The notes under the pieces are model-generated. The model worked only from the letters and a program-made list of their open reading frames with translations, ran no database searches and had not been told where the DNA came from. Positions 3,880-63,267 of a stretch of 64,000 bases of DNA are shown one piece after another. How positions within the stretch are numbered: the stretch's first letter is position 1; each line of letters starts with the position of its first letter. This DNA comes from Scyliorhinus canicula. Taxonomy: Eukaryota. The stretch is from the NCBI RefSeq assembly GCF_902713615.1, contig NC_052154.1:92449030-92513029 (forward strand). The letters run 5' to 3'. The position numbers were made by a program, and so were the translations under genes.

Positions 3880-4232
3880 ATTATAGAACAAAGAACAGCA
3901 CAGCACAGAACAGGCCCTTCGGCCCTCAATGTTGTGCCGAGCCATGATCACCCTACTCAAACCCACGTATCCACCCTATACCCGTAACCCAACAACCCCC
4001 CCCCCCCTTAACCTTACTTTTTATTAGGACACTACGGGCAATTTAGCATGGCCAATCCACCTAACCCGCACATCTTTGGACTGTGGGAGGAAACCGGAGC
4101 ACCCGGAGGAAACCCACGCACACAGGGGGAGGACGTGCAGACTCCACACAGACAGTGACCCAGCCGGGAATCGAACCTGGGACCCTGGAGCTGTGAAGCA
4201 TTTATGCTAACCACCATGCTACCCTGCTGCCC
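3880..4232 (-). mobile_element. HE1-like SINE
   Basis: Reverse complement of the 2526-2865 family. Further copies or variants lie at about 4566-4785, 4914-5240, 6085-6360, 13830-14178, 47853-48197, 53020-53450, 56190-56490, 58085-58415, 60547-60895 and 61900-62240. Confidence 0.85.
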
Positions 4233-5339
4233 CTGGAGTATTATGTACTCATCTGTATCATAATTTCTAGTGTATCATTGTTATTCAAGTGTTAATGTCC
4301 AGAGAACAAAGATATATCATGGATTGTGTAACATGGATGCAGATTCTTTAGTTTTTTCTTTCATAATTAATATTATTAATGCCTTATATTATAAAACTAA
4401 TTGTAAGATTGTGTTCCAGTAAAATAAATGCCTATCATACATTCCTGATACATTTTACTATTGCAGTTATTGTAGGATCATATCTACAGATTATTTATCA
4501 ATTTAACATACAAACAATGCCTTGTTTATAGATATTTGAACATTTAAAATGGAAATACATGCCACAGGGCAGCATATTTGTGCAGTGATTAGCAGTGCCA
4601 CCTCACGGCACCGAGGTCCCAGGTTCAATCCCGGCTTTGGTTCATTGTCTGTGTGGAGTTTGCACATTCTTCCCGTGTTGCGTGGGTTTCGCCCCCATAA
4701 CCTAAAGATGTGCAGGGTAGGTGGATTGGCCATGCTAAATTGCCCCTTAATTGGAAAAAAGGGATACTCCAACTTTTTTTTTAAAGAAGAAATACATGCC
4801 ATTGAGCAACAAAACAAATCAGCAGTAAAAAGCCATCCATGGCTTAATCGGGAAGTTAAGGGTAGTATTGGAATTGTTTTATACTTTATAATGTTACACA
4901 GAGACCTGGCTCTACATAGAACATAGAATTTACAGTGCAGAAGGAGGCCATTCAGCCCATCGAGTTTTCACCGACCTACTTAAGTCCTCACTTCCATCCT
5001 ATCCCTGCAACCCAATAAATAACCTCTCCTAACCTTTTTGGTCACTAAGGGCAATTTATCACGGCCAATCCACCTAACCTGCACGTCTTTCGATGATGGG
5101 AGGAAACCGGAGCACCCAGAGGAAACCCACACAGACACAGGGAGAACGTGCAGACTCCGCACAGTGACCCTGCGGGGAATCGAACCTGGGACCCTGGCAC
5201 TGTGAAGCGACAGTGCTATCCACTTGTGCTACCGTGCTGCCCATATGTTGCAAAGAATAGCAGTAAATCTGAGGACTGTAAGTCTTTTGAAATCAGCAAA
5301 GAGGTTCAAAACGCTGATCTAGAAGTGAAAAAATAGAAT

Positions 5340-12322: not shown

Positions 12323-13434
12323 ATGGTGGTTAGCATAAATGCTTCACAGCTCCAGAGTCCCAGGTTCGATTCCCGGCTGGGTCACTGCCTGTGTGGAGTC
12401 TGAATGTCCTCCCCGTGTGTGCGTGGGTTTCCTCCGGGTGCTCCGGTTTCCTCCCACAGTCCAAAGATGTGCAGGTTAGGTGGATTGGCCATGATAAATT
12501 GCCCTTAGTGTCCTAAAAAATAAGGTTAATGGAGGGGGTTGTTGGGTTAATGGTATGGGGTAGATACATGGGTTTGAGTAGGGTGATCATTGCTCGGCAC
12601 AACATCGAGGGCTGAAGGGCCTGTTCTGTGCTGTACTGTTCTATGTTCTATGTTCTATTAAGTCACCTCTTAACCTTCTTCTCTCTAACGAAAACAACCT
12701 CAAGTCCATCAGACTTTCCTCATAAGATTTTCCCTCCATACCAGGCAACATCCTTGTAAATCTCCTGTGCACCCGTTCCAAAGCTTCCACGTCCTTCCTA
12801 TAATGAGGTGACCAGAACTGTACGCAATACTCCAAATGCGGCCGTACCAGAGATTTGTATAGCTGCAACATGACCTCATGGCTCCGGAACTCAATCCCTC
12901 TACCAATAAAGGCCAACACACCATAGGCCTTCTTGACAACCCTATCAACCTGGGTGGCAACTTTCAGGGATCTTTGTAAATGGACACCGAGATCCCTCTG
13001 CACATCCACACTACGAACAATTTTACCATTAGCCAAATAGTCTGCATTCCTGTTATTCTTTCCAAAGTGAATCACCTCACACTTCTCTACATTAAACTCC
13101 ATTTGCCACCTCTCAGCCCAGCTCTGCAGCTTATCTATGTCCCTCTGTAACCTGCAACATCCTTCCACACTGTCTACAACTCCAGCGACTTTAGTGTCGT
13201 CTGCAAATTTACTCACCCAACCTTCTGTGCCCTCCTCTAGGTCATTTATAAAAATGACAAACAGCAACGGCCCCAGAACAGATCCTTGTGGTACGCCACT
13301 CGTAACTGAACTCCATTCTGAACATTTGCCATCAACCACCACCCTCTGTCTTCTTTCAACTAGCCAATTTCTGATCCACACCTCTAAATCACCCTCAATC
13401 CCCAGCCTCCGTATTTTCTGCAATAGCCGACCAT

Positions 13435-15200
13435 TGAGGCAAATTCTCGAGCACAAGTCATCAGTACTATTGCCAGGATATTTTCAGAGCCCATAGGCTT
13501 TGCAGTATCCAGTGAAGTGAATCATATTGGCTGAAGACTGACGTCTGTGTTTCTGGGAATCTCTGTAGGAGACGAAGATGAATCATCCACTCGACACCTC
13601 TGTCTGAAGATTGTTACGAGTGCCTCAGCTTTGTCTTTTGCACATACGTGCCTCCATCATTGAGGATGGGGATATTTGTGGAGCCTCCTCCTCCAGTGAG
13701 TTGTTTAATTGTCCACCACCATTCATGGCTGGATGTGGCAGGACTACTTCGATCTGATTAGTTTGTTGTGGAATTGATTAGCCGTGTCTATTAGTTGCTG
13801 TTTATGTATTTGACACACACATCGTCATGGAACATGGACATGGAATACATGGAACAGTACAGGCCCTTCGGCCCTCGATGTTGTGCCGAGCCATGATCAC
13901 CCTACTCAAACCCACGTATCCACCCTATACCCGTAACCCAACAACCCCCCCCTCCAAACCTTACATTTTTTAGGACACGACGGGCAATTTAGCATGGCCA
14001 ATCCACCTAACCCGCACATCTTTGGACTGTGGGAGGAAACCGGAGCACCCAGAGGAAACCCACGCACACACGGGGAGGACGTGCAGACTCCACACAGACA
14101 GTGACCCAGCCGGGAATCGAACCTGGGACCCTGGAGCTGTGAAGCATTTATGCTAACCACGATGCTACCGTTCTGCCCTGTGTTATAGCTACACCAGGTC
14201 GACACCTCAGTATCGTTTTGCCTGATGTTGCTCCTGGCATGCTATCCTGCACTCTTCATTGAACCAGGGTTGATCCCCTGGGTTGGTGGTAATGGTAGAG
14301 TGGGGAATATGCCAGGCCAAGTGCAGATTGTAGTTGAACACAATTCTGCTGCTGATGATGACTCACAGCGCTTCACTGATGCCCAGTCTTGAGTTGCTAG
14401 ATCTGTTTGTAGTCCATTCATTTATCATGCTGGTAGTGCCACACAACATGTGCAGATGGGACATTGTGTCCACAATGACTGTGCGGTGGTGACTTCTACC
14501 AATACAGTCATGGACAGGTGCATCTGCAGCAGCCAGATTGGTGAGGACGAGGCCAAGTATGTTTTTCCCTCTTGTTGGTTCCCTAACCACCTGCTGCCGT
14601 TCCAGTGTAGCAGCTATGTACGATAGACCCGGCCAGCTCGGTAATGGTAGTACTACTGAGCCACTCTTGGTGATGAACCCTGAAGTCCCCCACCCAGGGC
14701 ATATTCTGTCCTCTTGCCACCCTCAGTGCTTCCTGTAAGTGGTGTTCAACATGGAGGAGTACTGATTCATCAGCTGATGACCAGTATGTGGTAATCAGAA
14801 GGAGATTTCCTTGTCCATGTTTAACCTGAAGCCATGACACTTCACGGTGTCCAGAGTCGATGTTGAGGACTCCCAGAGTAACTCCCTCCAGAGTGTATAC
14901 CACTGCGCTGCCACGTCTGCTTGTCTGTCCTGCCGGTGAGACAGAACATACACAGGCATGGCGATAGTGGAGTCTGGGACATTGTCCGTAAAGTATAGTT
15001 CTGTGCGTATGGCTTTGTCAGGCTGTTGTTTAAGATGTCTGTGAGACAGCTCTCCCAGCTTTGGCACAAGCCCCCAGATGTTAGTGAGGAGATCTTTGCA
15101 GGGTCATCAGTGCTGGGTTTTCAGTTGTTGTTTCCGGTGCCTGGCTCAATGCTTGTGTACCATCCAGTTTCATTCCTCTTTTGTGTTTTTGTAGCCATTG
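13435..15200 (-). mobile_element. Degenerate non-LTR retrotransposon, APE-endonuclease region of a second LINE family, interrupted by a SINE
   Basis: Minus-strand translation EVSWLQVKHGQGNLLLITTY…VGDFRVHHQEW…VREPTRGKNILGLVLTN…GRSHHRTV retains the APE motifs GDFN, LDL and SDH in decayed form. Confidence 0.75.
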
Positions 15201-16823: not shown

Positions 16824-18773
16824 TAAGAACATAAGAACATAAGAACTAGGAGCAGGAGTAGGCCATCTGGCCACTCGAGCCTGCTCCTCCATTCAATGAG
16901 ATCATGGATGATCTTTTGTGGACTCAGCTCCACTTTCCGGCCTGAACACCATAACCCTTAATCCCTTTATTCTTCAAGAAACTATCTATCTTTACCTTAA
17001 AAACATTTAATGAAGGAACCTCAACTGCTTCACTAGGCAAGAAATTCCATAGATTCACAACCTTTGGGTGAAGAAGTTCCTCCTAAACTCAGTCTTAAAT
17101 CTACTTCCCTTATTTTGAGGCTATGTCCCCTAGTTCTGCTTTCACCCGCCAGTGGAAACAACCTGCCCGCATCTATCCTATCTATTCCCTTCATAATTTT
17201 AAATGTTTCTATAAGATCCCCCCTCATCCTTCTAAATTCCAATGAGTACAGTCCCAGTCTACTCAACGTCTCCTCATAATCCAACCCCTTCAGCTCTGGG
17301 ATTAACCTAGTGAATTTCCTCTGCACACCCTCCAGTGCCAGTCTGTCCTTTCTCAAGTAAGGAGACCAAAACTGAACACAATACTCCAGGTGTGGCCTCA
17401 CTAACACCTTATACAATTGCAACATTACCTCCCTAGTCTTAAACTCCATCCCTCTAGCAATGAAGGACAAAATTCCATTTGCCTTCTTAATCACCTGTTG
17501 CACCTGTAAACCAACTTTCTGTGACTCATGCAATAGCACACCCAGGTCTCTCTGCACAGCAGCATGTTTTAATATTTTATCATTTAAATAATAATCCCTT
17601 TTGCTGTTATTCCTACCAAAATGGATAACCTCACATTTGTCAACACTGTATTCCATCTGCCAGACCCTAGCCCATTCACTTAACCTATCCAAATTCCTCT
17701 GCAGACTTCCAGTATCCTCTGCACTTTTCGCTTTACCACTCATCTTGGTGTGATCTGCAAACTTGGACACATTGCCCTTGGTCCCCAACTCCAAATCATC
17801 TATGTAAATTGTGAACAATTGTGGGCCCAACACGGACCCCTGAGAGACACCACTAGCTACTGATTGCCAACCAGAGAAACACCCATTAATCCCCACTCTT
17901 TGCTTTCTATTAATTAACCAATCCTCTATCCATGCTACTACTTTACCCTTAATGCCATGCATCTTTATCTTATGCAGCAACCTTTTGTGTGGCACCTTGT
18001 CAAAGGCTTTCTGGAAATCCAGATATACCACAACCATTGGCTCCCCATTATCTACTGCACTGGTAATGTCCTCAAAAAATTCCACTAAATTAGTTAGGCA
18101 TGACCTGCCCTTTATGAACCCATGCTGCATCTGCCCAATGGGACAATTTCTATCCAGATGCCTCGCTATTTCTTCCTTGATGATCGATTCCAGCATCTTC
18201 CCTAATACCGAGGTTAAGCTCACTGGCCTATAATTTCCTGCTCTCTGCCTACCTCCTTTTTTAAACAGTGGTGTCACGTTTGCTAATTTCCAATCCACCG
18301 GGACCACCCCAGAGTCTAATGAATTTTGGTAAATCATCATTAGTGCATCTGCAATTTCGCTAGCCATCTCTTTTAGCACTCTGGGATGCATTCCATCAGT
18401 GCCAGGAGACTTGTCTACCTTTAGCCCCATTAGCTTGCCCATCACTACCTCCTTAGTGATAAAAATCCACTCAAGGTCCTCACCTGCCATAGCCTCATTT
18501 CTATCAGTCACTGGCATGTTATTTGTGTCTTCCACTGTGAAGACCGACCCAAAAAACCTGTTCAGTTCCTCAGCCATTTCCTCATCTCCCATTATTAAAA
18601 CTCCCTTCTCATCCTCTAAAGGACCAATATTTACCTTCGCCACTCTTTTTTGTTTTAGATATTTGTAAAAACTTTTACTGTCTGTTTTTATATTCTGAGC
18701 AAGTTTACTCTCATACTCTATCTTACTCTTCTTTATAGCTTTTTTAGTAGCTTTCTGTTGCCCCCTAGAGATT
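16824..18773 (-). mobile_element. 5'-truncated CR1 (RT + 3' UTR)
   Basis: RT ORF with YRPVSLT, QHGF, DFQKAFDKV and QGSVLGP, and FADH in place of FADD. Frameshift near the C-terminus; (TTCTTATG)n tail. Same subfamily as 33725-36890 and 63268-64000. Confidence 0.92.
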
Positions 18774-21700: not shown

Positions 21701-22602
21701 TCCTAACAGAAAGCAGGATGTAGGAAAGTGGGAGTCAGTGGAATAATAGGTATCTATCTATCCATTATAGGTAGCTGTGGGAATCAGTGGAACTTTAGCA
21801 GATTATTATTTACAGCCTAACCCCAGTACTCATTGAGTGCTATATGAAACCTGAAGAGAAACAAAATGGATCAACATCAGAGTTGATTGGACAGGGGGAT
21901 ATCCATCGCACCGTCAGGGAATCTCACACAAAGCCGATAATCCATCCCCGATTAACCTCTACACCGGAATATCTCCGATTGCCATTTCGCAGGATTGTTC
22001 ATGCGAACTCATCCTGCAAAATTAACTCCAATGGCCGGGGAGAGGGAAGGTGGGAGGCGTGGGATGGGTTTGCAAAGTGCGTTGGGGGGGGGGGGGGCAT
22101 GGATGTCATATTTGGATTTAACTCAATTATTTTCTCAAGACGTGGACCTCCTCTTATTAACAATGAAAAATGAAAATGAAAATCGCTTATTGTCACGAGT
22201 AGGCTTCAATGAAGTTACTGTGAAAAGCCCCGAGTCGCCACATTTGGCGCCTGTCGGAGAGGCTGCTGGCCTGCTTGGTCTGCTTTAAAAGCCAGCGATT
22301 TAGCCCAGTGAGCTAAACTAGCCCCTGCGATCCCGCATTCTGTTCAAAGGTTCCCGCCTCATTCCAGCAACGTGCTGTCACACTGTCGCTTTCCTAATGC
22401 TGTCAATGAGGTCAATCCCACATTCCGGCCAATAAGAAACTACTTAAACTTCGATTGACGGGTGCTGTCCAGGTCTCATTCATAACTCGTCCCTTGAAAT
22501 AGGTTGCGACATTTGAGGGAACAGCTCACCACGTCATCTATCAAATCGGACTGTCAATAAAATATTTGCAAATTATCAGAGGCACATCAGATCATTTGCG
22601 CT

Positions 22603-22648
22603 ATGTTTGGATGTCAATACATATGGGCCCTGGGAATTATTTACGAAG
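22603..22648 (+). CDS. Gene 2 exon 1: signal-peptide (leader) exon
   Basis: ATG at 22603, translating MFGCQYIWALGIIYE, then a phase-1 donor G/GTactt at 22649. It joins the V exon to give MFGCQYIWALGIIYEVVSA. A homologous leader lies at 53682. Confidence 0.85.
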
Positions 22649-22726
22649 GTACTTTCCGCAACAAACAACAAGGTCTTTCCCCTTCAGTTTCTTCCGCTCA
22701 GTCTACCAATCTTTCATCCACCCATC

Positions 22727-22800
22727 GACCTACCTACCTACCTCCCTCCCTCCCTACCTACCTCCCTACCTACCTGTCCAGCTCTCTCTCTCTCACTCTG
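22727..22800. repeat. (CCTA/CCCT)n plus (CT)n microsatellite in the leader intron
   Basis: ctacctacctacctccctccctccctacctacc…ctctctctctc. Confidence 0.85.
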
Positions 22801-22861
22801 TCTGCCGTTACAGTATAATTTAAAGTATAAATATGGTAACTACATGTTTAATATGTTACAG

Positions 22862-23173
22862 TTGTTTCTGCCTCAGTGTCGCAAACTCCTGAAAGCACCA
22901 TTCTGATGGCAGGTTCAGACATGACGTTCCATTGTACAGCGAGCCCAGTCCTGATTCACTCACACGTGGATGTTTATTGGTGGAAACTTGGCAACCAAGC
23001 CTCATTACAACCAGATTCTGACGGCAGAAAACGGTTCTTTCCTTTTACAAATGGAGCGACTTCATTCCAGATCCTGAATGTCCGTGTCCCCGACTCCGGA
23101 TTCTATTACTGCGGAGTGCGAGACTCAGGTAACGAGATCCTGAATGGAACCGGATCGAAACTTGTTGTGCACG
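22862..23173 (+). CDS. Gene 2 exon 2: V-set Ig domain with germline-joined J-like strand
   Basis: Acceptor ttacAG at 22860-61 and donor G/GTaagc at 23174; 312 nt, phase 1-1. Motifs MTFHC, VYWW, FQILNVRVPDSGFYYC and a J-like G-x-G motif NGTGSKLVV all sit in one exon. No RSS seen. Confidence 0.93.
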
Positions 23174-23439
23174 GTAAGCGAGTTGCCGCCTCTGTTATTG
23201 TGGGTGGTTGTATGGAGTATCATGGGTTGCTTTGATTATTGAGTGAATTGATTGCTGATGTTGATTGGGGGAAGAGGATGAGAGAGCATTATTTAAAGTC
23301 AGATCTAAAACCATGTCACAATTCTTTGTTTTCTATTCATCAACATTCTGTGTTAATTAGTGCAGGGTAACACAAAGAGGACTTGCGCAATACATGGGAG
23401 CAAAAGGGACCTTAATTGTCAACGTTCTGTGATTTGTAA

Positions 23440-24772: not shown

Positions 24773-27494
24773 GAGGGGGTTATTGAGAGGAGTTATAGGG
24801 AGGTAGTCACACATCAGGTAAAAGAAGAAGGTAGATGGGTTACCATCAGGGGAACGAGAGGGAACCGGCAGGCAGTGCAGGGATCCCCTGTGGTCGTTCC
24901 CCTCAATAACAAGTATACCGTTTTGGATACTGTTGGGGGGGGGGGAACGACTTACCTGGGGTAAACAATGGGGCACAGGTCTCTGGCACAGAGTCTGTCC
25001 CTGTTGCTCAGAAGGGAAGGGAGAAGAGGAACAGAGCACTTGTCATTGGGTACTCCATAGTTAGAGGAATAGACTGGAGGTTCTGTGGGAACGAAAGAGA
25101 CTCACGGTTGGTGTGTTGCCTCCCAGGTGCCAGGGTTCGTGATGTCTCTGATCATGTTTTTGGGATCCTTAAGGGGGAGGGGGAACAGCCCCAAGTCGTG
25201 GTCTAAATAGGTACCAATGACATAGGTAGGAAGAGAGATGGGGATTTGAGACAGAAATTCAGGGAGCTAGGGTGGAAGCTGAGAGCTAGAACAAACAGAG
25301 TTGTTATCTTTGGGTTGTTAGCCGTGCCACGTGCTAGCGAAGTGAGAAGTAAGGAGAGTGAGGAGTTGACCACGTGGCTACAGGGATGGTGCAGGAGGGA
25401 GGGTTTTGGTTTCCTGGATAATTGGGGCTCATTCTGGGGTAGGTGGGACCTCTACAAACAGGATGGTCTTCACCTGAACCAGAGGGGTACCAATATCCTG
25501 GCGGGGAGATTTGCTAGTGCTCTTCGGGGGGGGGGGGGGGGGGGGGGTTTTAAACTAATTCTGCAGGGGGATGGGAACCTAAATTGTAGTCCCAGTGTCC
25601 AGGATGTTGAGAGTAGTGAGCTCAGGGATAGGGTTAAAAGTTCGAAAGAGGGCACCGGCAAGCAAGATGCTGGTTTGAAGTGTGTCTACTTCAACGCCAG
25701 GAGCATCCGGAATAAGGTGGGTGAGCTTGCAGCATGGGTTGGTACCTGGGATCTCGATGTTGTGGCGATTTGGAGACATGGGTAGGGCAGGGACAGGAAT
25801 GGTTGTTGCAGGTTCCAGGATTTAGATGTTTCTGTAAGAACAGAGAAGATGGAAAAAGTGGTGGGGGGGGGGGGGGGTGTGGCATTGTTAATCAAGGAAA
25901 GTATTACAGCGGCAGAAAGGACGTTTGAGGACTTGTCTACTGAGGTAGTATGGGCCGAGGTTAGGAACAGGAGAGGAGAGAGGTCAGTGTGTTGGGAGTT
26001 GTCTATAGACCTCCGAATAGTTACAGAGATGTAGAGGATAGGATAGCAAAGATGATTCTCGACAGGAGCGAGAGTAACAGAGTAGTTGTTATGGGGGACT
26101 AGAACTTTCCAAATATTGACTGGAAATACTATAGTTCGAGTACTATAGATGGGTCAGTTTTTGTGCGGTGTGTGCAGGAGGGTTTTCTGACACAGTATGT
26201 AGACAGGCCAACAAGGGCGATGCCCCATTGGATTTGGTACTGGGTAATGAACCCGGCCAGGTGTTAGATTTAGATGTAGGTGAGCACTTTGGTGATAGTC
26301 ATCACAATTCGGTTATGTTTACTTTAGCGATGGGCAGGGATAGGTATATACCACAAGGCAAGCATTATAGCTGGGGGAAAGGCAACTATTCGGCAAGATT
26401 TAGGATGTATAGTATGGGGAAGGAAACTGCAGGGGATGGGTACAATCGAAATGTGGAGATTTTTCAAGGAACAGCTACTGCGTGTCCTTGATAAGTATGT
26501 ACCTGTCAGGCAGGGAGGAAGTTGTCGAGCAAGGGAACCGTGGTTTACTAAGGAAGTTGAAGCGCTTGTCAAGAGGAAGAAGAAGGCTTATGTTAGGACG
26601 AGACATGAAGGCTCAGTTAGGGCACTTGAGAATTACAAGTTAGCCAGGAAGGACCTAAAGGGAGAGTTAAGAAGAGCGAGGAAAGGACACGAAAAGTCAT
26701 TGGCGGATAGGATCAAGGAAAACCCTAAGGCTTTCTATAGGTATATCAGGAACAAAAGAATGACTGGAGTAAGATTAGGGCCCATCAAGGATAGTAGTGG
26801 AAAGTTGTGTGTGGAATCAGAGGAGATAGGGGAAGCGTTAAATGGATATTTTTCTTCAGTGTTTACACTGAAGAAAGACAATGTTGTCGAGGAGAATATT
26901 TAGGTACAGTCGACCAGGCTAGATGGGATTGAGGTTCACAAGGAGGAGGTGTTAGCAATTTTGGAAAATGTAAAAATAGATAAATCCCCTGGGCCAGATG
27001 GGATTTATCCTAGGATTCTTTGGGAAGCCAGGAGGAGATTGCAGAGCCTTTGTCCTTGATCTTTATGTCGTCTTTGTCGACAGGAATAGTGCCGGAAGAC
27101 TGGAGGATAGCAAATGTTGCCCCCTTGTTCAAGAAGGGGAGTAGAGACAACCCTGGTAATTAAAGACCTGTGAGCCTTACTTCGGTTGTGGGTAAAATGT
27201 TGGAAAAGGTTACAAGAGATAGGGTTTATAATCACCTTGAAAAGAACAAGTTGATTAGCGATACTGAACACGGTTTTGTGAAGGGTAGGTCATGCCTCAT
27301 AAACCTTATTGAGTTTTTTGAGAAGTTGACGAAACAGGTGGATGAGGGTAAAGCGGTTGATGTGGTGTATATATGGATTTCAGTAAGGCGTTTGATAAGG
27401 TTCCCCACGGTAGGCTATTGCAGAAAATAAGGAAGTATGGAATTGAAGGTGATTTAGCGGTTTGGATCAGTAATTGGCTAGCTGAAAGAAGATG
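24773..27494 (+). mobile_element. Degenerate CR1 (ORF1 esterase + ORF2 APE/part of RT), truncated at both ends, in the V-C1 intron
   Basis: Colinear with about 41020-43710 of the intact element (DGLHLN, CVYFNARS, LDLVLG, SLTSVVGK). Carries stops, frameshifts and expanded G runs; no 3' tail. Confidence 0.92.
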
Positions 27495-28814: not shown

Positions 28815-29123
28815 CTTCTCCAGAACCCATAAGGCTGATCCCCAAAGTGTCCCCAATCAACACATCTGCTCTGTCACTTGTGTGTGAAGCGGCCGAGTTC
28901 TATCCAGAGTCTCTCACCTTCACCTGGTATAAAAACGACAGCAACATTGTGACTGGGATCAGCACCATTCAGAAGGTGAATTCAGAGGGAACGTACGAAG
29001 CTTCCAGCATCTTGAAAACGACAGGGCCAGCCGAGAGCGGAATTGTGTATACCTGTGTGGTGTTTCACCTCACACTGCAGGACCCAGCCGTGGCTGTTTA
29101 CTATGACTCCATTTCCAACTCAG
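28815..29123 (+). CDS. Gene 2 exon 3: C1-set Ig domain
   Basis: Acceptor ttccacAG and donor G/GTtaga at 29124; 309 nt, phase 1-1. C1 motifs LVC…EFYP…TFTW, GTYEASSIL and YTCVVFH. Confidence 0.93.
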
Positions 29124-29869: not shown

Positions 29870-29983
29870 ACCATGAGCCCACGCCCATTTATCTGCAAAT
29901 TTCTGGATACACAGGAGCTGCATTGATATTTCTAACACTCGGTGCTTTCATTTTGATGAGTTATAAACTCAGTAAGTGTAACG
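29870..29983 (+). CDS. Gene 2 exon 4: stalk + transmembrane exon
   Basis: Acceptor tttacAG and donor G/GTaagg at 29984; phase 1-1. Translates DHEPTPIYLQISGYTGAALIFLTLGAFILMSYKLSKCN: an uncharged hydrophobic stretch followed by KLSK. Confidence 0.85.
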
Positions 29984-33666: not shown

Positions 33667-36600
33667 TGTGGTGAATATATTCACCTAGTGCATGAGCTAT
33701 CTGTATGATACTGTAACCTATTCTAGAGCTGTTGGGGAGGGTTTAAACTAATGTGGCAGGGGGATGGGAACCAATGCTGGAAGTTGGAAGGTAGTAAAAC
33801 AGGGACAGAAACAAAAGGAAGTAAGGGGAAAAGTGCAAGGCAGAGAAGACATAGTCAGAAATCCATAAGGTCGACAGTACAAGGTACAGTGACTGAGGGG
33901 AGCACAGTGAATAGGCCCAGTAATAACAAAAGGAATAAAACTGGAGATGTTAAGATTCAAAACAGAGGTAAAAAAAACAACATAAGTGTACTTTACCTGA
34001 ATGCTCGTAGTATTCGGAATAAAGTAAATGAGTTGGCGGCACAAATCATCGTAAATGACTATGATTTAGTGGCCATTACTGAAACATGGTTAAAGGATGG
34101 TCACGACTGGGAGTTAAATATCCGAGGGTATCAAACTATTCGGAAGGACAGAGTGGATGGTAAGGGAGGTGGTGTTGCTCTGTTATTTAAGGATGACATC
34201 CGGGCAATAGTAAGGGATGACATTGGTGCTATGGAGGATAAGGTTGAATCCATTTGGGTGGAAATCAGGAATAGTGAGGCGAAAAAGTCACTGATAGGAG
34301 TAGTCTATCGGCCACCAAATAGTAACGACATGGTGGGGCAGGCAATAAACAAAGAAATAACTGATGCATGTAGAAATGGTACAGCAGTAATCATGGGGGA
34401 TTTTAATCTACATGTCGATTGGTTTAACCAGGTCGGTCAAGGCAACCGTGAGGAGGAGTTTATAGAATGTATCCGCGATAGTTTCCTAGAACAGTATGTA
34501 ATGGAACCTATGAGGGAACAAGCGGTCCTAGATCTTGTCCTGTGTAATGAGACAGGATTGATTCATGATCTCATAGTTAGGGATCCTCTCGGAAGGAGCG
34601 ATCACAATATGGTGGAATTTAAAATACAGATGGAGGGTGAGAAAGTAAAATCAAATACTAGTGTTTTGTGTTTAAAAAAAGGAGATTACAAGGGGATGAG
34701 AGAAGAACTAGCTAAGGTAGACTGGGAGCTAAGACTTTATGGTGGAACAGTTGAGGAACAGTGGAGAACCTTCCAAGCAATTTTTCACAATGCTCAGCAA
34801 AGGTTTATACCAACAAAAAGGAAGGACGGAAGAAAGAGGGAAAATCGACCGTGGATACTAAGGAAATAAGGGAGAGTATCAAATTGAAGGAAAAAGCATA
34901 TAAAGTGGCAAAGATTGCTGGGAGATTAGAGGACTGGGAAATCTTTAGGGGGCAACAGAAAGCTACTAAAAAAGCTATAAAGAAGAGTAAGATAGAGTAT
35001 GAGAGTAAACTTGCTCAGAATATAAAACCAGACAGTAAAAGTTTTTACAAATATATAAGACAAAAAAGAGTGGCTAAGGTAAATATTGGTCCTTTAGAGG
35101 ATGAGAAGGGAGTTTTAATAATGGGAAATGAGGAAATGGCTGAGGCACTGAACAGGTTTTTTGGGTCGGTCTTCACAGTGGAAGACACAAATAACATGCC
35201 AGCGACTGATAGAAATGAGGCTATGACAGGTGAGGACCTTGAGAGGATTGTTATCACTAAGGAGGGAGTGATGGGCAAGTTAATGGGGCTAAAGGTAGAC
35301 AAGTCTCCTGGCCCTGATGGAATGTATCCCAGAGTGCTAAAAGAGATGGCTAGGGAAATTGCAGATGCACTAGTGATAATTTACCGAAATTCACTAGACT
35401 CTGGGGTGGTCCCGGTGGATTGGAAATTAGCAAACGTGACGCCACTGTTTAAAAAAGGAGGTAGGCAGAAAGCAGGGAATTATAGGCCAGTGAGTTTAAC
35501 TTCGGTAATAGGGAAGATGCTGGAATCTATCATCAAGGAAGAAATTGCGAGGCATCTGGATAGAAATTGTCCCATTGGGTAGACGCAGCATGGGTTCGTA
35601 AAAGGCAGGTCATGCCTAACTAATTTAGTGGAATATTTTGAGGACATTACCAGTGCAGTAGATAACGGGGAGCCTATGGATGTGGTATATCTGGATTTCC
35701 AGAAAGCCTTTGACAAGGTGCCACACAAAAGGTTGCTGCATAAGATAAAGATGCATGGCATTAAGGGTAAAGTAGTAGCATGGATAGAGGATTGGTTAAT
35801 TAATAGAAAGCAAAGAGTTGGGATAAATGGATGTTTCTCTGGTTGGCAATCAGTGGCTAGTGGTGTCCCTCAGCGATCCGTGTTGGGCCCACAATTGTTC
35901 ACAATTTACATTGATGATTTGGAGTTGGGGACCAAGGGCAATGTGTCCAAGTTTGCAGATGACACTAAGATGAGTGGTAAAGCGAAAAGTGCAGAGGATA
36001 CTGGAAGTCTGCAGAGGAATTTGGATAGGTTAAGTGAATGGGCTAGGGTCTGGCAGATGGAATACAATGTTGACAAATGTGAGGTTATCCATTTTGGTAG
36101 GAATAACAGCAAACGGGATTATTATTTAAACAATAAAATATTAAAGCATGCCGCTGTTCAGAGAGACTTGGGTGTGCTAGTGCATGAGTCACAGAAGGTT
36201 GGTTTACAAGTGCAACAGGTGATTAAGAAGGCAAATGGAATTTTGTCCTTCATTGCTAGAGGGATGGAGTTTAAGACTAGGGAGGTTATGTTGCAATTGT
36301 ATAAGGTGTTAGTGAGGCCACACCTGGAGTATTGTGTTCAGTTTTGGTCTCCTTATCTGAGAAAGGACGTACTGGCACTGGAGGGTGTGCAGAGGAGATT
36401 CACTAGGTTAATCCCAGAGCTGAAGGGGTTGGATTATGAGGAGAGGTTGAGTAGACTGGGACTGTACTCGTTGGAACTTAGAAGGATGAGGGGGGATCTA
36501 ATAGAAACATTTAAAATTATGAAGGGAATAGATAGGATAGATGTGGGCAGGTTGTTTCCACTGGCGGGTGACAGCAGAACTAGGGGGCATAGCCTCAAAA

Positions 36601-37130
36601 TAAGGGGAAGTAGATTTAGGACTGAGTTTAGGAGGAACTTCTTCACCCAAAGGGTTGTGAATCTATGGAATTCCTTGCCCAGTGAAGCAGTTGGGGCTCT
36701 TTCATTACATGTTTTTAAGGTAAAGATAGATAGTTTTTTGAAGAATAAAGGGATTAAGGGTTATGGTGTTCGGGCTGGAAAGTGGAGCTGAGTCCACAAA
36801 AGATCAGCCATGATCTAATTGAATGGCGGAGCAGGCTCGAGGGGCCAGATGGCCTACTCCTGCTCCTTTTTCTTATATTCTTATATTCTTATGACCTGGA
36901 AGTGTATTCTTATAGTCTTATGACCTGGAAGTGGTTATAAGAGCTACTTCCAAGTCCTGTACTGTAACGGGGGCTCCGCCTCTGGCTCCCCCCTCACCAG
37001 GGCCATATATAGACTGGCCACTAGTGGGTGGCACTCATCTGTACACCCAACTCTGGCTAGGCAATTCATGATTAATAAAGCCTAATGTTCACTCGCTCTC
37101 TCAGTTTCTTGGTGAATTGACGGTACATCA
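33667..37130 (+). mobile_element. Solo LTR (about 300 bp) interrupted by a 3.2-kb CR1
   Basis: Starts TGTGGTGAAT at 33667 and resumes at about 36890 with a TATA-like catatatag, AATAAA at 37074-79 and the end …gacggtacatCA at 37130. Flanks gtgct/atgct form a 5-bp TSD with one mismatch. Confidence 0.7.
33725..36890 (+). mobile_element. CR1 with near-complete ORF2 (APE+RT), 5'-truncated at the ORF1/ORF2 junction
   Basis: ORF2 from ATG 33751 to the stop at 36791 has one frameshift (about 34860) and one TAG (35580-82). APE motifs LNARS, ITETW, YRPP, GDFN, SDH; RT motifs QHGF, DFQKAFD, FADD. (TATTCTT)n tail. Confidence 0.95.
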
Positions 37131-38205: not shown

Positions 38206-39252
38206 ACACCTGCTAGGTGCAGCCTGCTGGTGCTGCAAACATTGTCCATTTTATCCTATATGATTTGCGTTCCTCCATTTTGTATTCAACTTTGGTAAAG
38301 CATTTGAAGTAGTCACTGAGACTTCTAATGATCAGGGAGACTTGTTAATAATTCAGCTTAAAATATGTTGCAAAATCCAAATGTACTTCAGCTCTGAATC
38401 AGCTGGATGGACAGGAATACTCAGATTAATTTCCTTGAAGGAGTCAATAACACCAGTATCGAGGCCATGATCATTCAAAACCAAATCCATTGGGCCGTCC
38501 ATATGATTTGGAAATCTGAGTCCTGACTGCCAAAACAAATCTTATTCACCCAGCTCAAGGAAGGATGCCGATCAAGAGGAGGACAAAGGAAGCTCTTCAA
38601 AGACACCTTTTAGGTTTACCTCAAGAAATAAAACATAGACGTCATGCCTGGTAGAGCTTTGCTCAGAGGTGACCAACTTGGAGGAACCTCCTGATTGAAG
38701 GTCACAATTCTTTAAGAACATTCGAAAGCAAGAGGAGTTCCAGAAAAGGAGCCTGAGAAAGGATTGTCCATGACTTAGCATCCAAGGACCAATGCCATCT
38801 TTTGAAAACCCTGCCAAGTGAGTGATTGAAGATAGGGCACTAGGTTAAGGCTCATCAGCCACATAAGGACCCACGGAACCCGTGACCTGTAACACTGCGT
38901 ATCTTAGGTAGACAATCATACCCGTGAGCGACTGATAACCACATTCTATCCATTACAGTTCCTTTAATGGAATTAACATCCTCGTGACAAACCAAAGTTC
39001 TAAAAAAAACTCATTCACCTTCTGTGACTACGCCCACGTTTTATACAGTAAATTACACATTTAATGAAATTAACAGCCTCATGACAAATGAAACTTTTAA
39101 AAGTGTCTTCCTTTCATATTATTTGCATTTTTAACATTTTAAACAATATGCATGAATAATATAAAACTCTAACCTATCAAAAAATAATGTGTCCGACAGA
39201 ACCCCAACATTGCAGAAGGAGGCCATTCGGCCCATTGAGTCTGCACTGAGCC
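38206..39252 (+). repeat. Direct duplication of about 1.05 kb, copy A (copy B is 51973-53021)
   Basis: Colinear and roughly 95-97% identical by eye. Contains the RTE remnant, an AT-rich spacer and the start of a SINE. Confidence 0.9.
38290..38880 (+). mobile_element. RTE-clade LINE 3' fragment (degenerate)
   Basis: Translates SIEAMIIQNQIHWAVHMI…LPKQILFTQLKEGCRSRGGQRKLFKDT…RLRLISHIRTH, a typical RTE ORF C-terminus. A second copy lies at about 52050-52650. Confidence 0.75.
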
Positions 39253-40853
39253 TCTCTATTGGGTTCCGAAGACATTCGATAACGGAGTCCTGTTGTCCAA
39301 AGTGGCTAAGCCTATGCCAAATCTAGTTTGGGCTACAGATACCGCAGGAGAATTTTTATCCCTAAACTAATCTTGGAATAAGGCGAATATCAGGAGACAG
39401 CTCCTTGAGGCAGAAAAACTCGGAGCAGGAGTCGGCCATTCGACCCCTCGGGATTGCCTAGCTATTTATTATTGAAACCATTTGTGGAACGAACTGCATG
39501 GAAGAGTGGCGGAGGCAGTTTCGATGGTGGTTTTCAAAAGAGAGTTAGATTATTACCCAAAACGGAAAATCAGTTCCAGGCGAAAGGCCTGGGAGTGGCG
39601 CTGAAACAATGAGGTTTCAATTCCTAAAACGCTTTTCACGGTCCATTAGAGCAATGAAGTAATGTTTCAAGTTCTGAGTGACTAGCACTTGCAGAGAGCT
39701 GACACAGACATGACGGGCCGAAGGTCTCCTTCAGCGCTGTAACCATTCTGTGATTCTAAATATTATTGAATCATAAATAGGCTGGGGACAAGAAGGGAAG
39801 ACAATGGATTAGTGGTGATTTCACTGGGCTAGTAATACAGACATGCTCTGGGGACGTCGGTTCAATCCCATCAGGGCAACTGGTAGAATTTCAATTAAAT
39901 GAATTAATCTGGGAATAAACAGTTTGCCACATCTGAGTCACTAATGTGAAGGAAACCTTCCATCCTTACCTGGCCTGACATACATTTGTCTCCAGATCCA
40001 CAGCAATGTGGTTGATTCTTGCCTCCTGAAATGGTGTGATAATGTGATGGGCAACAATGCACACATCCCGTGAAATAATAAATTAAAAACTGAAAACATA
40101 GTTCAGCATTCTTTATTTTGATCCATTAATAGATAGCTTAAGTTTAAACTTTCACAAAGGGTCATCTGGACTCGAAACATTAGCTCTTTTCTCTGCCTTG
40201 AGATGCTGCCAGACCTGCTGAGATTTTCCAGCATTTTCTGTTTGGTTTAAGTTTAAACGCACTAAAGTAGCAACAGTTGATAAAACTGTTCCAGGCATTA
40301 ATCTTCTAGAATGGAACAATGTACTGCTTTATATGTACATACGGATTTCAGTTAAATCCTGTAGATCCTGACATTCCCTCCCCCCCCCCCCCCCCGACCA
40401 CCCGCCCTCTTACATATTGTAAAGCTGGTTTAGCTCAGTGGGCTAGACAACTGGTTTGTAGGCCAGCAGCGGGGTTTCAATTCCCGTACCAACACTGTGT
40501 ACCCAAACAGGCGCCGGAATGCTGCGACCAGCAGAGGGCAGCAGAGCAGAGCTACTGATCAGCTGTTCTGGGGAAATTTGCATACGTGCAGTGCGGTCAG
40601 CCTAAGTTGAAGGTGGTTTGTGGAGGGGCTGTTGGCAAGTGACAGTTAAACCCGAAACACTTTCCCACCCTACCTCCTCCTCTAACCAACCCCCCCACCC
40701 CACGGTGGTTGGGAAGCGGGAGCAGGGGCCTGTCGTGAAGGTGAGTGAGTGCCTTTAAGTTTGCTTACCTTTCAGCGGGATCAGGGTTTGAGGTAATATC
40801 AGGTAAGCTCTTCCTTTCTTTTTCTTTTTCTTGTTTTTTTTAATCTAGAGGGG

Positions 40854-41780
40854 ATGTCAGGGAAGGCAGTACAATGCTCCTCCTGCAGAATGTTTGAGGT
40901 GAGGGACGCCGTCAGTGTCCCTGCTGATTTCATCTGTGGGAAGTGCACCCAACTCCAGCTCCTCAAAAACCGTGTTAGGGACCTGGAGCTTGAGCTGGAT
41001 GAACTTCGGATCATTCGGGAGGCAGAGGGGGTCATAGATAGGAGCTTCAGGGAAGTAGTTACACCAAAGACTGGAGATAGATGGGTAACTGTAAGAGGGA
41101 CTGGGAAGAAGCAGTCAGTGCAGGGACCCCCTGCGGTCGTTCCCCTGAGTAACAAGTATACCGTTTTGGATACTTGTGGGGGGGACGACTTACCAGGGGT
41201 AAGCCATGGGGTACGGGCCTCTGGCACGGAGTCTGTCCCTGTTGCTCAGAAGGGAAGGGGGGAAAGGAGTAGAACATTAGTAATTGGGGACTCAATAGTC
41301 AGGGGCACAGATAGGAGATTTTGTGGGAGCGAGAGAGACTCACGTTTGGTATGTTGCCTCCCAGGTGCAAGGGTACGTGATGTCTCGGATCGTGTTTTCC
41401 GGGTCCTTAAGGGGGAGGGGGAGCAGCCCCAAGTCGTAGTCCACATTGGCACTAACGACATAGGTAGGAAAGGGGACAAGGATGTCAGGCAGGCCTTTAG
41501 GGAGCTAGGATGGAAGCTCAGAGCGAGAACAAACAGAGTTGTTATCTCTGGGTTGTTGCCCGTGCCACGTGATAGTGAGATGAGGAATAGGGAGAGACAG
41601 CAATTAAACACGTGGCTACAGGGATGGTGCAGGCGGGAGGGATTCAGATTTCTGGATAACTGGGGCTCTTTCTGGGGAAGGTGGGACCTCTATAGACAGG
41701 ATGGTCTACATCTGAACCTGAGGGGCACCAATATCCTGGGGGGGAGATTTGTTAGTACTCTTTGGGGGGGTTTAAACTAA
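40854..41780 (+). CDS. CR1 ORF1p: zinc finger, coiled coil/leucine zipper and SGNH esterase
   Basis: 308 aa, open. CSSC…CGKC, LQLLKNRVRDLELELDEL, GDS, GTND and DGLH (SGNH blocks intact). Confidence 0.93.
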   Translation: MSGKAVQCSSCRMFEVRDAVSVPADFICGKCTQLQLLKNRVRDLELELDELRIIREAEGVIDRSFREVVTPKTGDRWVTVRGTGKKQSVQGPPAVVPLSNKYTVLDTCGGDDLPGVSHGVRASGTESVPVAQKGRGERSRTLVIGDSIVRGTDRRFCGSERDSRLVCCLPGARVRDVSDRVFRVLKGEGEQPQVVVHIGTNDIGRKGDKDVRQAFRELGWKLRARTNRVVISGLLPVPRDSEMRNRERQQLNTWLQGWCRREGFRFLDNWGSFWGRWDLYRQDGLHLNLRGTNILGGRFVSTLWGGLN

Positions 41781-44665
41781 TTCAGCAGGGGCATGGGAAC
41801 CTGGATTGTAGTTTTGGGGTGCGAGAGATTGAGAGTAGAGAGGTCAGGAGCACAGTTTTGACTTCGCAGGAGGGCGGCAGTGTTCAGGTCTGTGGTTTGA
41901 AGTGTGTCTATTTCAATGCCAGGAGTATACGAAATAAGGTAGGGGAACTGGCAGCATGGGTAGGTACCTGGGACTTCGATGTTGTGGCCATTTCAGAGAC
42001 ATGGATAGAGCAGGGACAGGAATGGTTGTTGCAGGTTCCGGGGTTTAGGTGCTTTAGTAAGGTCAGAGAAGGGGGCAAAAGAGGGGGAGGTGTGGCGCTG
42101 CTAGTCAAGGACAGTATTACGGTGGTAGAAAGGATGCAAGATGGGGACTCTTCTTCCGAGGTAGTATGGGCTGAGGTTAGAAACAGGAAAGGAGAGGTCA
42201 CCCTGTTGGGAGTTTTCTATAGGCCACCTAATAGTTCTAGAGATGTAGAGGAAAGGATGGCGAAGATGATTCTGGAAAAGAGCGAAAGTAACAGGGTAGT
42301 TGTTATGGGAGACTTTAACTTTCCTAATATTGACTGGAAAAGATATAGTTCGAGTACATTGGATGGGTCGTTCTTTGTACAATGTGTGCAGGAGGGTTTT
42401 CTGACACAATATGTTGACAGGCCAACAAGAGGTGAGGCCACTTTGGATTTGGTTTTGGGTAATGAACCAGGCCAGGTGTTAGATCTGGAGGTAGGTGAAC
42501 ACTTTGGAGACAGTGACCACAATTCGGTGACCTTTACGTTAGTGATGGAAAGGGATAAGTATACCCCGCAGAGCAAGAGTTATAGCTGGGGGAAGGGCAA
42601 TTATGATGCCATTAGACATGACTTAGGATGTGTTGGTTGGAGAAGTAGGCTGCAAGGGTTGGGCACACTGGATATGTGGAGCTTGTTCAAGGAACAGCTA
42701 TTGCATGTTCTTGATAAGTACGTACCAGTCAGGCAGGGAGGAAGGGGTCGAGCGAGGGAACCGTGGTTTACCAAAGAAGTGGAATCTCTTGTTAAGAGGA
42801 AGAAGGAGGCCTATGTGAAGATGAGGCGTGAAGTTTCAGTTGGGGCGCTTGATAGTTACAAGGAAGCGAGGAAGGATCTAAAGAGAGAGCTGAGACGAGC
42901 AAGGAGGGGACATGAGAAGTCTTTGGCAGGTAGGATCAAGGAAAACCCAAAAGCTTTCTATAGGTATGTCAGGAATAAAAGAATGACTAGGGTAAGAGTA
43001 GGGCCAGTCAAGGACAGTGGTGGGAAGTTGTGTGTGGAGGCTGAGGAGATAAGCGAGATACTAAATGAATACTTTTCGTCAGTATTCACTCAAGAAAAAG
43101 ATAATATTGTGGAGGAGAATGCTGAGACCCAGGCTATTAGAATAGATGGCATTGAGGTGCGTAGGGAAGAAGTGTTGGCAATTCTGGACAAGGTGAAAAT
43201 AGATAAGTCCCCGGGGCCGGATGGGATTTATCCTAGGATTCTCTGGGAAGCCAGGGAAGAGATTGCTGAGCCTTTGGCTTTGATTTTTAGGTCATCATTA
43301 GCTACAGGAATAGTGCCAGAGGACTGGAGGATAGCAAATGTGGTCCCTTTGTTCAAGAAGGGGAGTAGAGATAACCCCGGTAACTATAGGCCGGTGAGCC
43401 TAACGTCTGTGGTGGGTAAAGTCTTGGAGAGGATTATAAAAGATACGATTTATAATCATCTAGATAGGAATAATATGATTAGGGATAGTCAGCATGGTTT
43501 TGTGAAGGGTAGGTCATGCCTCACAAACCTTATCGAGTTCTTTGAGAAGGTGACTGAACAGGTAGACGAGGGTAGAGCAGTTGATGTGGTGTATATGGAT
43601 TTCAGTAAAGCGTTTGATAAGGTTCCCCACGGTCGGCTATTGCAGAAAATACGGAGGCTGGGGATTGAGGGTGATTTAGAGATGTGGATCAGAAATTGGC
43701 TAGTTGAAAGAAGACAGAGAGTGGTAGTTGATGGGAAATGTTCAGAATGGAGTTCAGTTACGAGTGGCGTACCACAAGGATCTGTTCTGGGGCCGTTGCT
43801 GTTTGTCATTTTTATAAATGACCTAGAGGAGGGCGCAGAAGGATGGGTGAGTAAATTTGCAGACGACACTAAAGTCGGTGGAGTTGTAGACAGTGCGGAA
43901 GGATGTTGCAGGTTACAGAGGGACATAGATAAGCTGCAGAGCTGGGCTGAGAGGTGGCAAATGGAGTTTAATGTGGAGAAGTGTGAGGTGATTCACTTTG
44001 GAAAGAATAACAGGAATGCGGAATATTTGGCTAATGGTAAAATTCTTGGTAGTGTGGATGAGCAGAGGGATCTCGGTGTCCATGTACATAGATCCCTGAA
44101 AGTTGCCACCCAGGTTGATAGGGTTGTGAAGAAGGCCTATGGTGTGTTGGCCTTTATTGGTAGAGGGATTGAGTTCCGGAGCCATGAGGTCATGATGCAG
44201 CTGTACCAAACTCTGGTACGGCCGCATTTGGAGTATTGCGTACAGTTCTGGTCGCCTCATTATAGGAAGGACGTGGAAGCTTTGGAACGGGTGCAGAGGA
44301 GATTTACCAGGATGTTGCCTGGTATGGAGGGAAAATCTTATGAGGAAAGGCTGATGGACTTGAGGTTGTTTTCGTTAGAGAGAAGAAGGTTAAGAGGTGA
44401 CTTAATAGAGGCATACAAAATGATCAGAGGGTTAGATAGGGTGGACAGCGAGAGCCTTCTCCCGCGGATGGAGGTGGCTAGCACGAGGGGACATAGCCTT
44501 AAATTGAGGGGTAATAGATATAGGACAGAGGTCAGAGGTGGGTTTTTTACGCAAAGAGTGGTGAGGCCGTGGAATGCCCTACCTGCAACAGTAGTGAACT
44601 CGCCAACATTGAGGGCATTTAAAAATTTATTGGATAAGCATATGGATGATAAGGGCATAGTGTAG
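41762..44665 (+). CDS. CR1 ORF2p: APE endonuclease + reverse transcriptase (no in-frame ATG before the APE domain)
   Basis: 967 open codons. APE motifs FNARS, ISETW, YRPP, GDFN, SDH; RT motifs YRPVSLT, QHGF, DFSKAFDKV, GVPQGSVLGP, FADD. Lies in the -1 frame and overlaps the end of ORF1. Confidence 0.93.
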   Translation: MGGFKLIQQGHGNLDCSFGVREIESREVRSTVLTSQEGGSVQVCGLKCVYFNARSIRNKVGELAAWVGTWDFDVVAISETWIEQGQEWLLQVPGFRCFSKVREGGKRGGGVALLVKDSITVVERMQDGDSSSEVVWAEVRNRKGEVTLLGVFYRPPNSSRDVEERMAKMILEKSESNRVVVMGDFNFPNIDWKRYSSSTLDGSFFVQCVQEGFLTQYVDRPTRGEATLDLVLGNEPGQVLDLEVGEHFGDSDHNSVTFTLVMERDKYTPQSKSYSWGKGNYDAIRHDLGCVGWRSRLQGLGTLDMWSLFKEQLLHVLDKYVPVRQGGRGRAREPWFTKEVESLVKRKKEAYVKMRREVSVGALDSYKEARKDLKRELRRARRGHEKSLAGRIKENPKAFYRYVRNKRMTRVRVGPVKDSGGKLCVEAEEISEILNEYFSSVFTQEKDNIVEENAETQAIRIDGIEVRREEVLAILDKVKIDKSPGPDGIYPRILWEAREEIAEPLALIFRSSLATGIVPEDWRIANVVPLFKKGSRDNPGNYRPVSLTSVVGKVLERIIKDTIYNHLDRNNMIRDSQHGFVKGRSCLTNLIEFFEKVTEQVDEGRAVDVVYMDFSKAFDKVPHGRLLQKIRRLGIEGDLEMWIRNWLVERRQRVVVDGKCSEWSSVTSGVPQGSVLGPLLFVIFINDLEEGAEGWVSKFADDTKVGGVVDSAEGCCRLQRDIDKLQSWAERWQMEFNVEKCEVIHFGKNNRNAEYLANGKILGSVDEQRDLGVHVHRSLKVATQVDRVVKKAYGVLAFIGRGIEFRSHEVMMQLYQTLVRPHLEYCVQFWSPHYRKDVEALERVQRRFTRMLPGMEGKSYEERLMDLRLFSLERRRLRGDLIEAYKMIRGLDRVDSESLLPRMEVASTRGHSLKLRGNRYRTEVRGGFFTQRVVRPWNALPATVVNSPTLRAFKNLLDKHMDDKGIV

Positions 44666-51133: not shown

Positions 51134-51974
51134 TGTTGGTCGTTCTGGGTGAGTGTGCTTAACACTCAATTTGGCTCTGTTTCTTTACTTAGTTCTAGAG
51201 TCGCCAGGTGTCGTTAAGACACCGTCACAAGTTCAAGGTGAAGTTCAAAGCAATAAAACCAATTAGTAAGTCCAAACAACTGAGTTTATTATAATACAAT
51301 TATAATAACTACCCATGCACACGCTAAAAGTATTAAACTTATTCCTACCGCTAAATAAACTAATACTTATCTCGAAGGAACTGCTGGGTCAGGGAACAAG
51401 GCCTCTTGCTCTGCTCTGGTCTGCAGACTTCAGGTTGGTAAAAGTTAAAAGGGGTCAGGAGTGTCTATCTCTGGTAGCGATCGTTGTGAGACACTTACTT
51501 GCTGGTGGCTGCTGTCCGAACCCTCTCCTCTCTCTCGTTCAAGGTCTTCTTGGCAAAAGCTGGTCGAGGTGCTGGTCCACGGAGGAGTGCTCGTCAAAGA
51601 GAGAGGAGGGCTGGACGAGAAGACTGAACCAGGTGTGGGACCTGTCTTTTATAGGTCCCAGGGATCCGCGCCCCTTTGGGCGGACTCCCTTACCTGCTTG
51701 GAATCGATTGGGTCTCTTCCCAATCAATATGTTTGAATACCCCCAATACTGAGGCTCTCCTCAGCTACTGGGCGGGCCTTCAGGCTCTTTGTTTTCGAAT
51801 CTTGCTGGTGCCTGAGTGTCTGGTATCCTTTACAATGTTGCAGTTGCTTCCCCAATTGTGTCCATTGTCTCTGGAATCGTTCCATTAACATGCTAATTAT
51901 CCAGGTGATTGCCTCATTAGTATGCGGAACGTTCGTTTCGGTGCTGTCTGCTTTCTTAGCAGACAGAATCCACA
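51134..51974 (-). mobile_element. Solo LTR (841 bp)
   Basis: On the minus strand it runs TGTGGATTC…ACCAACA, with TATAAAA (plus-strand 51647-53) and AATAAA (plus-strand 51285-90) in the expected order. No TSD. Confidence 0.8.
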
Positions 51975-53681: not shown

Positions 53682-54175
53682 ATGTTTGTGTGCTAGTGCA
53701 GATGGGCTTTGGGGATTTTTTACGAAGGTATTTTTCATTCCAGTTGGCCGACCTCTAGTGTTCATTTTGTTTCTTCGAAGCAGTGATTTCGCGTGATTGT
53801 CTGTCTGTCCATCTGTCTGCGGTTGAAGTATAATTCAATTGTATGTGGTAACTACATGTTTAATATGTTACAGTTGTTTCTGCCTCAGTGTCGCAAACTC
53901 CTGAAAGCACCATTCTGATGGCAGGTTCAGACATGACGTTCCATTGTACAGCGAGCCCAGTCCTGATTCACTCACACGTGGATGTTTATTGGTGGAAACT
54001 TGGCAACCAAGCCTCATTACAACCAGATTCTGACGGCAGAAAACGGTTCTTTCCTTTTACAAATGGAGCGACTTCATTCCAGATCCTGAATGTCCGTGTC
54101 CCCGACTCCGGATTCTATTACTGCGGAGTGCGAGACTCAGGTAACAGGATTCTGAATGGAACCGAATTGTGCACG
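53682..54175 (+). pseudogene. Leader + V exon pseudogene, paralogous to gene 2
   Basis: Leader 53682-53727 has an in-frame TAG at codon 5. V exon 53874-54175 is 302 nt versus 312 nt in gene 2, with a 10-nt deletion that removes the J-like GTGSKL. No convincing C1 or TM exon downstream in the window. Confidence 0.88.
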
Positions 54176-62940: not shown

Positions 62941-63267
62941 CAGAACCTCCTCTCTGTCTATGTTAATTTCTTTGATTTGATCACAGTCCTTCTCCCGGAG
63001 TTATATACCCACATTATTTATCTTCTGGCTCCACAAAATTACCACTGTGGTCCTTAATGGTATCTACTCTTTCCCACATTATCCAGTTTCCCTTAATGAA
63101 TTTCTAAAATAACAAGATTTTTCTATATTTTACCTGCCAGTCCCCTTTCATGCCCTTTTTTGCTCTTCTAATTTCCTTTTTAAGTTCCCTCTTAGGCATT
63201 CTGTATGTCTCTATTGATCACATTTTTATCCTACCGTCAGTCTAACTCTGCTCCCATTATTGATTTC

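Follow-up and report, generated by a model that had tools for sequence, protein, structure and literature searches.

In the immunoglobulin loci of chicken and rabbit, arrays of many diverse pseudo-V donors stand beside a rearranged V(D)J acceptor, and sequence is copied from the former to the latter in somatic events in B cells. Several germline systems lie closer to the case described here. Non-allelic gene conversion has been reviewed (PMC3924818), and between human duplicates it leaves tracts with a mean length of ~250 bp (10.1101/135152). In SIGLEC11/SIGLEC16(P), the V-set ligand-binding exon has been converted repeatedly, and independently in several primates, the human donor being the non-functional SIGLEC16P (PMC5701461). 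In sharks, gene conversion has already been described for the constant-domain exons of UrIg2 (PMC12227049).

The locus we describe lies in the small-spotted catshark Scyliorhinus canicula, within a stretch of 64,000 nucleotides that was analysed as a whole (“the window”), and consists of a functional gene, “A,” and a decayed relative, pseudogene “B” (Table 1). Like the human conversions, it has a tract of a few hundred bp homogenised between linked paralogs with diverged flanks, crossing an intron–exon border and similar in length (300 bp, compared with ~250 bp). It differs in that the host is a cartilaginous fish and the gene a V-C1-TM receptor gene, and in that the polarity of the event is one that we infer.

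Table 1. Positions, within the 64-kb window, of the features of gene A, pseudogene B and the SINE-like family.
Feature	Position	Strand	Remarks
Gene A, leader exon	22603..22648	+	46 nt, intact; matches the N-terminus of P0156
Gene A, V exon (V-set domain)	22862..23173	+	Germline-joined J-like strand GTGSKLVV; phase-1 donor; Pfam V-set E 3.4e-8
Gene A, C1-set exon	28815..29123	+	Identical to P0156; matched in the PDB by C1 domains of Ig, SIRP and MHC class II
Gene A, transmembrane exon	29870..29971	+	P0156 ends ...ILMSYKLT
Putative conversion tract, copy in functional gene A	22834..23133	+	Last 28 nt of intron 1 and first 272 nt of V exon
Putative conversion tract, copy in pseudogene B	53846..54145	+	Exact identity with 22834-23133; X5 and X1 contigs
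Pseudogene B, leader remnant	53682..53727	+	11/46 nt unlike A; TAG at 53694-53696 = leader codon 5
Pseudogene B, V exon remnant	53874..54175	+	302 nt; 10 nt lost between 54166 and 54167, with a frameshift in the J-like strand
SINE-like copies (among others)	2526-2872, 3883-4233, 12323-12658, 13854-14178, 58082-58417, 61905-62239

Our comparison bore out what the initial annotation had reported of the tract and its surroundings, namely a mismatch-free match, differing leaders, diverged introns, a disrupted end in the pseudogene, and borders that take in the acceptor and most of the V domain. In an exact comparison the two copies, both on the + strand and offset by 31012, are identical at 300/300 positions, and a mismatch borders either edge, so that the block cannot be extended by even one base on either side. 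Its left edge lies 28 nt upstream of the splice acceptor; its right edge lies 40 nt short of the donor, within the CDR3-equivalent loop and ahead of the J-like strand. By pairwise alignment the leaders differ at 11/46 positions, the number counted before, and the first introns, 213 nt in A and 146 nt in B, are largely unalignable. Directly 3' of the tract, B shows six substitutions over 41 aligned nt in addition to the 10-nt deletion in the J-like strand.

Colinear homology between A and B is confined to 22520–22655 and 22785–23184 (A coordinates). Self-BLAST returns ~370–400 nt of colinear similarity around the tract (22783–23152 against 53800–54164) and a weak 64% match in the promoter and leader region. 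Compared without gaps, the two loci are 70% identical over the promoter and leader, 74% over the 49 nt 5' of the tract, and 85% over the 51 nt 3' of it.

The gene A model, with a V exon of 312 nt, is identical to P0156, a 257-aa NCBI protein of S. canicula that carries the automatic name “H-2 class II ... E-D beta chain-like.” Its protein family was retrieved with the full-length horn-shark relative P0004 as query, while a search with the V exon alone found no homologous protein of 57–180 aa, a range outside which the longer relatives fall. Orthologs occur in Mustelus, Heterodontus, Heptranchias, Pristis, Leucoraja, and Callorhinchus. The automatic names of these relatives vary (Ig lambda-like, NCR3LG1-like and, in Callorhinchus, SIRP-alpha-like), and the V-C1-TM family, whose public names conflict across species, is in want of a proper one. 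Gene A has the features of a SIRP-like V-C1 receptor: an ectodomain of V-set and C1-set domains, a transmembrane segment, and orthologs across chondrichthyans. The RefSeq model has a very short tail, and a search downstream of the transmembrane exon for tail exons bearing an ITIM or ITSM gave none that was convincing. We found no specific published description of this V-C1-TM receptor.

Next to both V exons an RSS heptamer was sought and none was found; together with the J-like strand fused in the germline and the splice donor behind it, this makes gene A a non-rearranging gene. The best matches of the C1 exon among solved structures are shark UrIg2, immunoglobulin heavy-chain constant domains, SIRP alpha and gamma, and MHC class II beta. 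Membership of gene A in UrIg2 was considered and rejected, since the similarity is confined to the C1-set domain and the architecture differs. The two systems have in common a within-species homogenisation of Ig-superfamily exons in elasmobranchs, and among solved structures UrIg2 is the best match for the C1 domain of gene A; conversion in UrIg2, however, runs among tandem exons inside one functional gene, and gene A, being V-C1-TM, is not UrIg2.

Pseudogene B retains only a leader and a V exon. The second glycine of its G-x-G motif has become glutamate, and neither a C1 nor a transmembrane exon follows through position 64000, ~10 kb downstream. Outside the tract it combines private defects with ancestral-like residues that are also found in other sharks (V3, C6, and an R in the CDR3 loop), and this combination marks it as what appears from its sequence to be an old duplicate. 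Words specific to the B leader or intron are listed for 0/20 probable RNA runs of the species, and in several such runs the word content approximates the share that the tract takes up in a 1.2-kb stretch of B. The tract is thus expressed from A, and B looks silent, short of proof.

Repeats are frequent around both loci. A pair of inverted repeats of 1.95 kb (16824–18773 and 34940–36891, 95.4% identity) brackets gene A, with further related pieces at 36152–36884 and 63267–64000; these are probably members of a transposable element family, and the pair could promote inversion of the segment that holds gene A. A direct repeat of 1,053 bp (38206–39255 and 51972–53024, 97.2% identity) is not colinear with the A/B homology, and 0.7 kb lie between the end of its second copy and pseudogene B downstream of it. 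Two CR1-type LINE copies (24868–27492 and 41111–43714) are 81% identical, the first of them making up nearly half of the intron between the V and C1 exons of gene A. A SINE-like family of ~330 bp is scattered over the window in more than 10 copies with 85–98% identity.

The contrast between the tract and its flanks is stark: 0/300 positions differ within it, compared with 59/223 in the aligned flanks. On condition that the observed mismatches are spread randomly over the aligned sites, the probability of a clean run of 300 nt is ~6e-23 with all 59 flank mismatches placed over 523 aligned sites, and ~9e-12 with the near flanks only (18 mismatches over 387 sites). With flanks that are only 70–85% identical, these values exclude chance. 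Purifying selection is likewise ruled out as the source of the identity, which spans 28 intron nucleotides and all synonymous sites and has as one partner a pseudogene with a stop codon and a frameshift.

On these grounds, and because short-read contigs (below) tie the tract to the unique flank of B, the proposal in the initial annotation of a recent non-allelic gene conversion is well supported; the process is a known one and the instance is new. We consider it likely that the tract is the mark of a germline non-allelic (interlocus) conversion that took place recently between two linked paralogs, 31 kb apart and in the same orientation. When a DNA break was repaired, one copy would have served as template for the resynthesis of ~300 nt of the other, wiping out every difference between 22834/53846 and 23133/54145, with functional gene A most likely the donor and pseudogene B the copy rewritten. 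Such exchange has probably occurred more than once, which would keep both V bodies alike enough to pair anew.

The same product could have arisen by another recombination route, either a double unequal crossover or a small templated insertion, whose outcome in the sequence cannot be distinguished from a conversion tract. Each locus, however, has kept its flanks and its spacing, the tract edges show no junction of a duplication or deletion, and a pair of crossovers within 300 nt is much less probable than a single conversion. Target-site duplications and filler DNA were not seen at the tract edges. We regard this route as very improbable.

Whether the two identical copies exist in real DNA was addressed with Logan contigs, which are assembled de novo from short reads and free of any reference. 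Contigs of four runs were aligned to 53400–54600, i.e., to the B locus, while the A copy is backed by RNA-type contigs, word shares, and the RefSeq model. Two of the runs, X5 and X1, are samples of the catshark. In X5, a contig of 466 nt runs from 53670 (B-specific intron) through the whole tract, joining 176 nt of B-specific sequence to it with 0 substitutions, and in X1 a contig of 763 nt spans 53408–54164 with no indel inside the tract; as Logan contigs pop bubbles and drop minor variants, a single difference between A and B inside the tract could be hidden in either sample. The X5 contig stops exactly at 54145, the right edge of the tract, as expected of a de Bruijn graph at the point where two genomic continuations diverge. 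Since both contigs were assembled without a reference, the join between B flank and tract is not a product of polishing. Both loci are thus represented, B by the link from its flank to the tract in X5 and X1, and A by a spliced contig of an ortholog (see below) and by the share of words in RNA runs.

These contigs bear directly on the reading in which the V exons truly differ and one has been overwritten in silico by reads of the other. An exact repeat of 300 nt in a repeat-rich region would be prone to this, and the local assembly is imperfect, since the reference departs by ~10 nt from X1 and X5 within the B intron, where the depth dips. Against it stand the X5 join, free of substitutions over the full tract, the X1 link without an indel, and the X5 contig end, which behaves as if two continuations exist in the genome; moreover, polishing cross-talk cannot turn a divergence of 15–30% into 0% with edges as sharp as these. 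Such an artefact is, in our estimate, quite unlikely.

Two further features of B emerged from the contigs. In a TGTC-rich, low-complexity part of its intron (bin 53769–53809), X1 and X5 are ~10 nt shorter than the reference, either because the length is polymorphic or because the assembly has a small error here; in X5 this 10-nt difference, outside the tract, is the sole one in length. In X1, the alignment of both B-anchored contigs breaks off exactly where the deletion lies (54164/54167), with 29 and 13 letters left over. The break fits a B allele without the 10-nt deletion (29 + 13 − 12 = 30 = k − 1), so the frameshift may be polymorphic. A chimera of the B left flank and the A right flank was tried as an explanation of the X1 contig and rejected: it needs G>A or T>C at 54147 and 54151, and neither is among the kinds of change in X1. 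Finally, long contigs of another locus in X1, X5, and X17 match 54080–54129 alone, the 50 nt that encode the conserved ...DSGxYYC... motif, at ~82% and on the opposite strand; their most likely source is a more distantly related V-domain paralog at another genomic site.

The initial annotation had also held that the direction of the event cannot be read from two copies. This is correct for the two copies alone, which are symmetric, and no longer holds once orthologous proteins, an expressed ortholog, and the B ortholog of another species are considered, as a most likely direction, from A to B, can then be derived. When catshark A is compared with Mustelus, Heterodontus, and Heptranchias, the ratio of V to C1 identity is 0.85–1.00, and other species pairs fall in the same range; the V segment encoded by the tract thus resembles its orthologs as much as is usual relative to the unconverted C1 domain. 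In a related species (organism B), a spliced contig covers 53872–54164 with six differences. On both sides it continues with sequence unlike pseudogene B, A-type afterwards, and since these continuations do not fit the pseudogene, the contig represents the mRNA of an A ortholog with nearly the same V exon. The tract has an intact frame and is a normal member of its family, while a V body that came from a pseudogene with flanks 15–30% diverged should look decayed, which favours A to B.

The reverse germline conversion would have pseudogene B giving its V body to gene A and acting as a reservoir able to reshape the ligand-binding domain of A. Besides the symmetry of the two copies, it can point to SIGLEC11/16 in primates as a precedent for conversion of a V-set exon from pseudogene to gene (PMC5701461), and to B itself, which by keeping some ancestral-like states outside the tract has different sequence to offer there. 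The intact reading frame of a tract set between long-drifting flanks, a stop codon, and a frameshift speaks against it, as do the normal similarity of the tract to its orthologs and the expression of a nearly identical V exon in a related species. An intact donor B would, in addition, have needed an earlier refresh by A, which again amounts to a flow from A to B. We therefore think transfer from B to A unlikely.

Recurrence of the A-to-B transfer is suggested by a further species (organism C), in which a contig of 1066 nt is colinear with both flanks of B. Relative to the catshark, it differs at 37/392 left-flank sites (9.4%) and at only 3/163 sites (1.8%) over 53846–54008, and it becomes indel-rich from 54028; the comparison is with the B ortholog, and the count of differences beyond 54008 is derived from totals. 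Three differences are far too few where 9.4% is expected, so in this species too the B copy seems to have been overwritten from a conserved source, over a stretch whose right end lies at a different point. From these sequence comparisons the tract was most likely copied from A to B, and repeatedly.

With regard to timing, positions 22965 and 53977 have C in both reference copies, at a synonymous site of a His codon, and T in X1, organism B, and organism C. As both copies carry this C, and the site is still variable in the species, the reference haplotype underwent its latest event after the change arose. From 0 differences in 300 nt, the conversion is at most about 1/10–1/5 as old as the split from organism C.

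The nearest biological analogue of an A/B conversion would be SIGLEC11/SIGLEC16(P). In both cases the N-terminal V-set exon of an immune-type receptor is concerned together with a neighbouring, possibly non-functional copy, and in both, conversion concerns more than one species, here apparently the catshark and organism C. The primate genes differ in being paired inhibitory and activating receptors, with a pseudogene as the donor in human, whereas B is devoid of downstream exons and is most likely the acceptor. In particular, two expressed receptors with a shared ligand-binding domain and different signalling parts are not what we find, as B has no C1, transmembrane, or tail exon within 10 kb downstream, carries a stop codon and a frameshift, and is represented by its specific words in none of the RNA runs listed.

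By contrast, the suggestion in the initial annotation that the pseudogene serves as a reservoir of V sequence, analogous to pseudo-V templated diversification, is not supported. A tblastn search of the 64 kb for an array of diverse pseudo-V donors finds only A and B, so the window has a single pseudo-V, and over the tract this has no sequence that differs from A. Nor is there a rearranging V gene as acceptor: the V and J-like parts of gene A are joined in the germline without an RSS heptamer, and the donor behind them leads to the C1 exon. As in chicken and rabbit, a V pseudogene whose leader does not work lies close to a functional gene that bears a V exon, and sequence is copied between the two; unlike there, the pseudo-V is single and matches A over the tract, the gene does not rearrange, and the event belongs to the germline.

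Somatic diversification of the chicken or rabbit type, in which B would template conversion of A in immune cells, accordingly has only the layout in its favour, a V pseudogene near a V-bearing receptor gene on the same strand. A lone pseudo-V that is no array and that offers no diversity over the tract would be a poor template, and A does not rearrange; furthermore, the identity is present in germline assemblies and whole-genome contigs, and the expressed ortholog contig looks germline-like. We give this explanation next to no credence.

A further form of exchange deserves mention. Conversion between A and B might be ongoing and polymorphic in catshark populations, with tracts of varied extent, and B might sometimes return its divergent variants of the CDR3 loop and leader to A. 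The C found at 22965 and 53977 in the reference only, and the X1 B allele that departs from the reference at the site of the 10-nt deletion, are hints in this direction, and we hold the idea to be unlikely. If it is true, a dead copy would add allelic diversity to the ligand-binding V domain of a conserved, non-rearranging VJ-C1 receptor.

Gene conversion of the kind favoured here, recent, germline, and most likely from A into B, is an ordinary process, and a new diversity-generating route is not revealed by it. The locus offers a clean and well-bounded natural tract, of ~300 bp, of what is probably non-allelic conversion in an elasmobranch, and hints that two species underwent such events independently. 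It suggests that the V exons of shark V-C1 receptors trade sequence with dead neighbours. Owing to such exchange, trees, dating, and dN/dS of the family that are based on the V exon can mislead, and the mapping of short reads to either copy is ambiguous.
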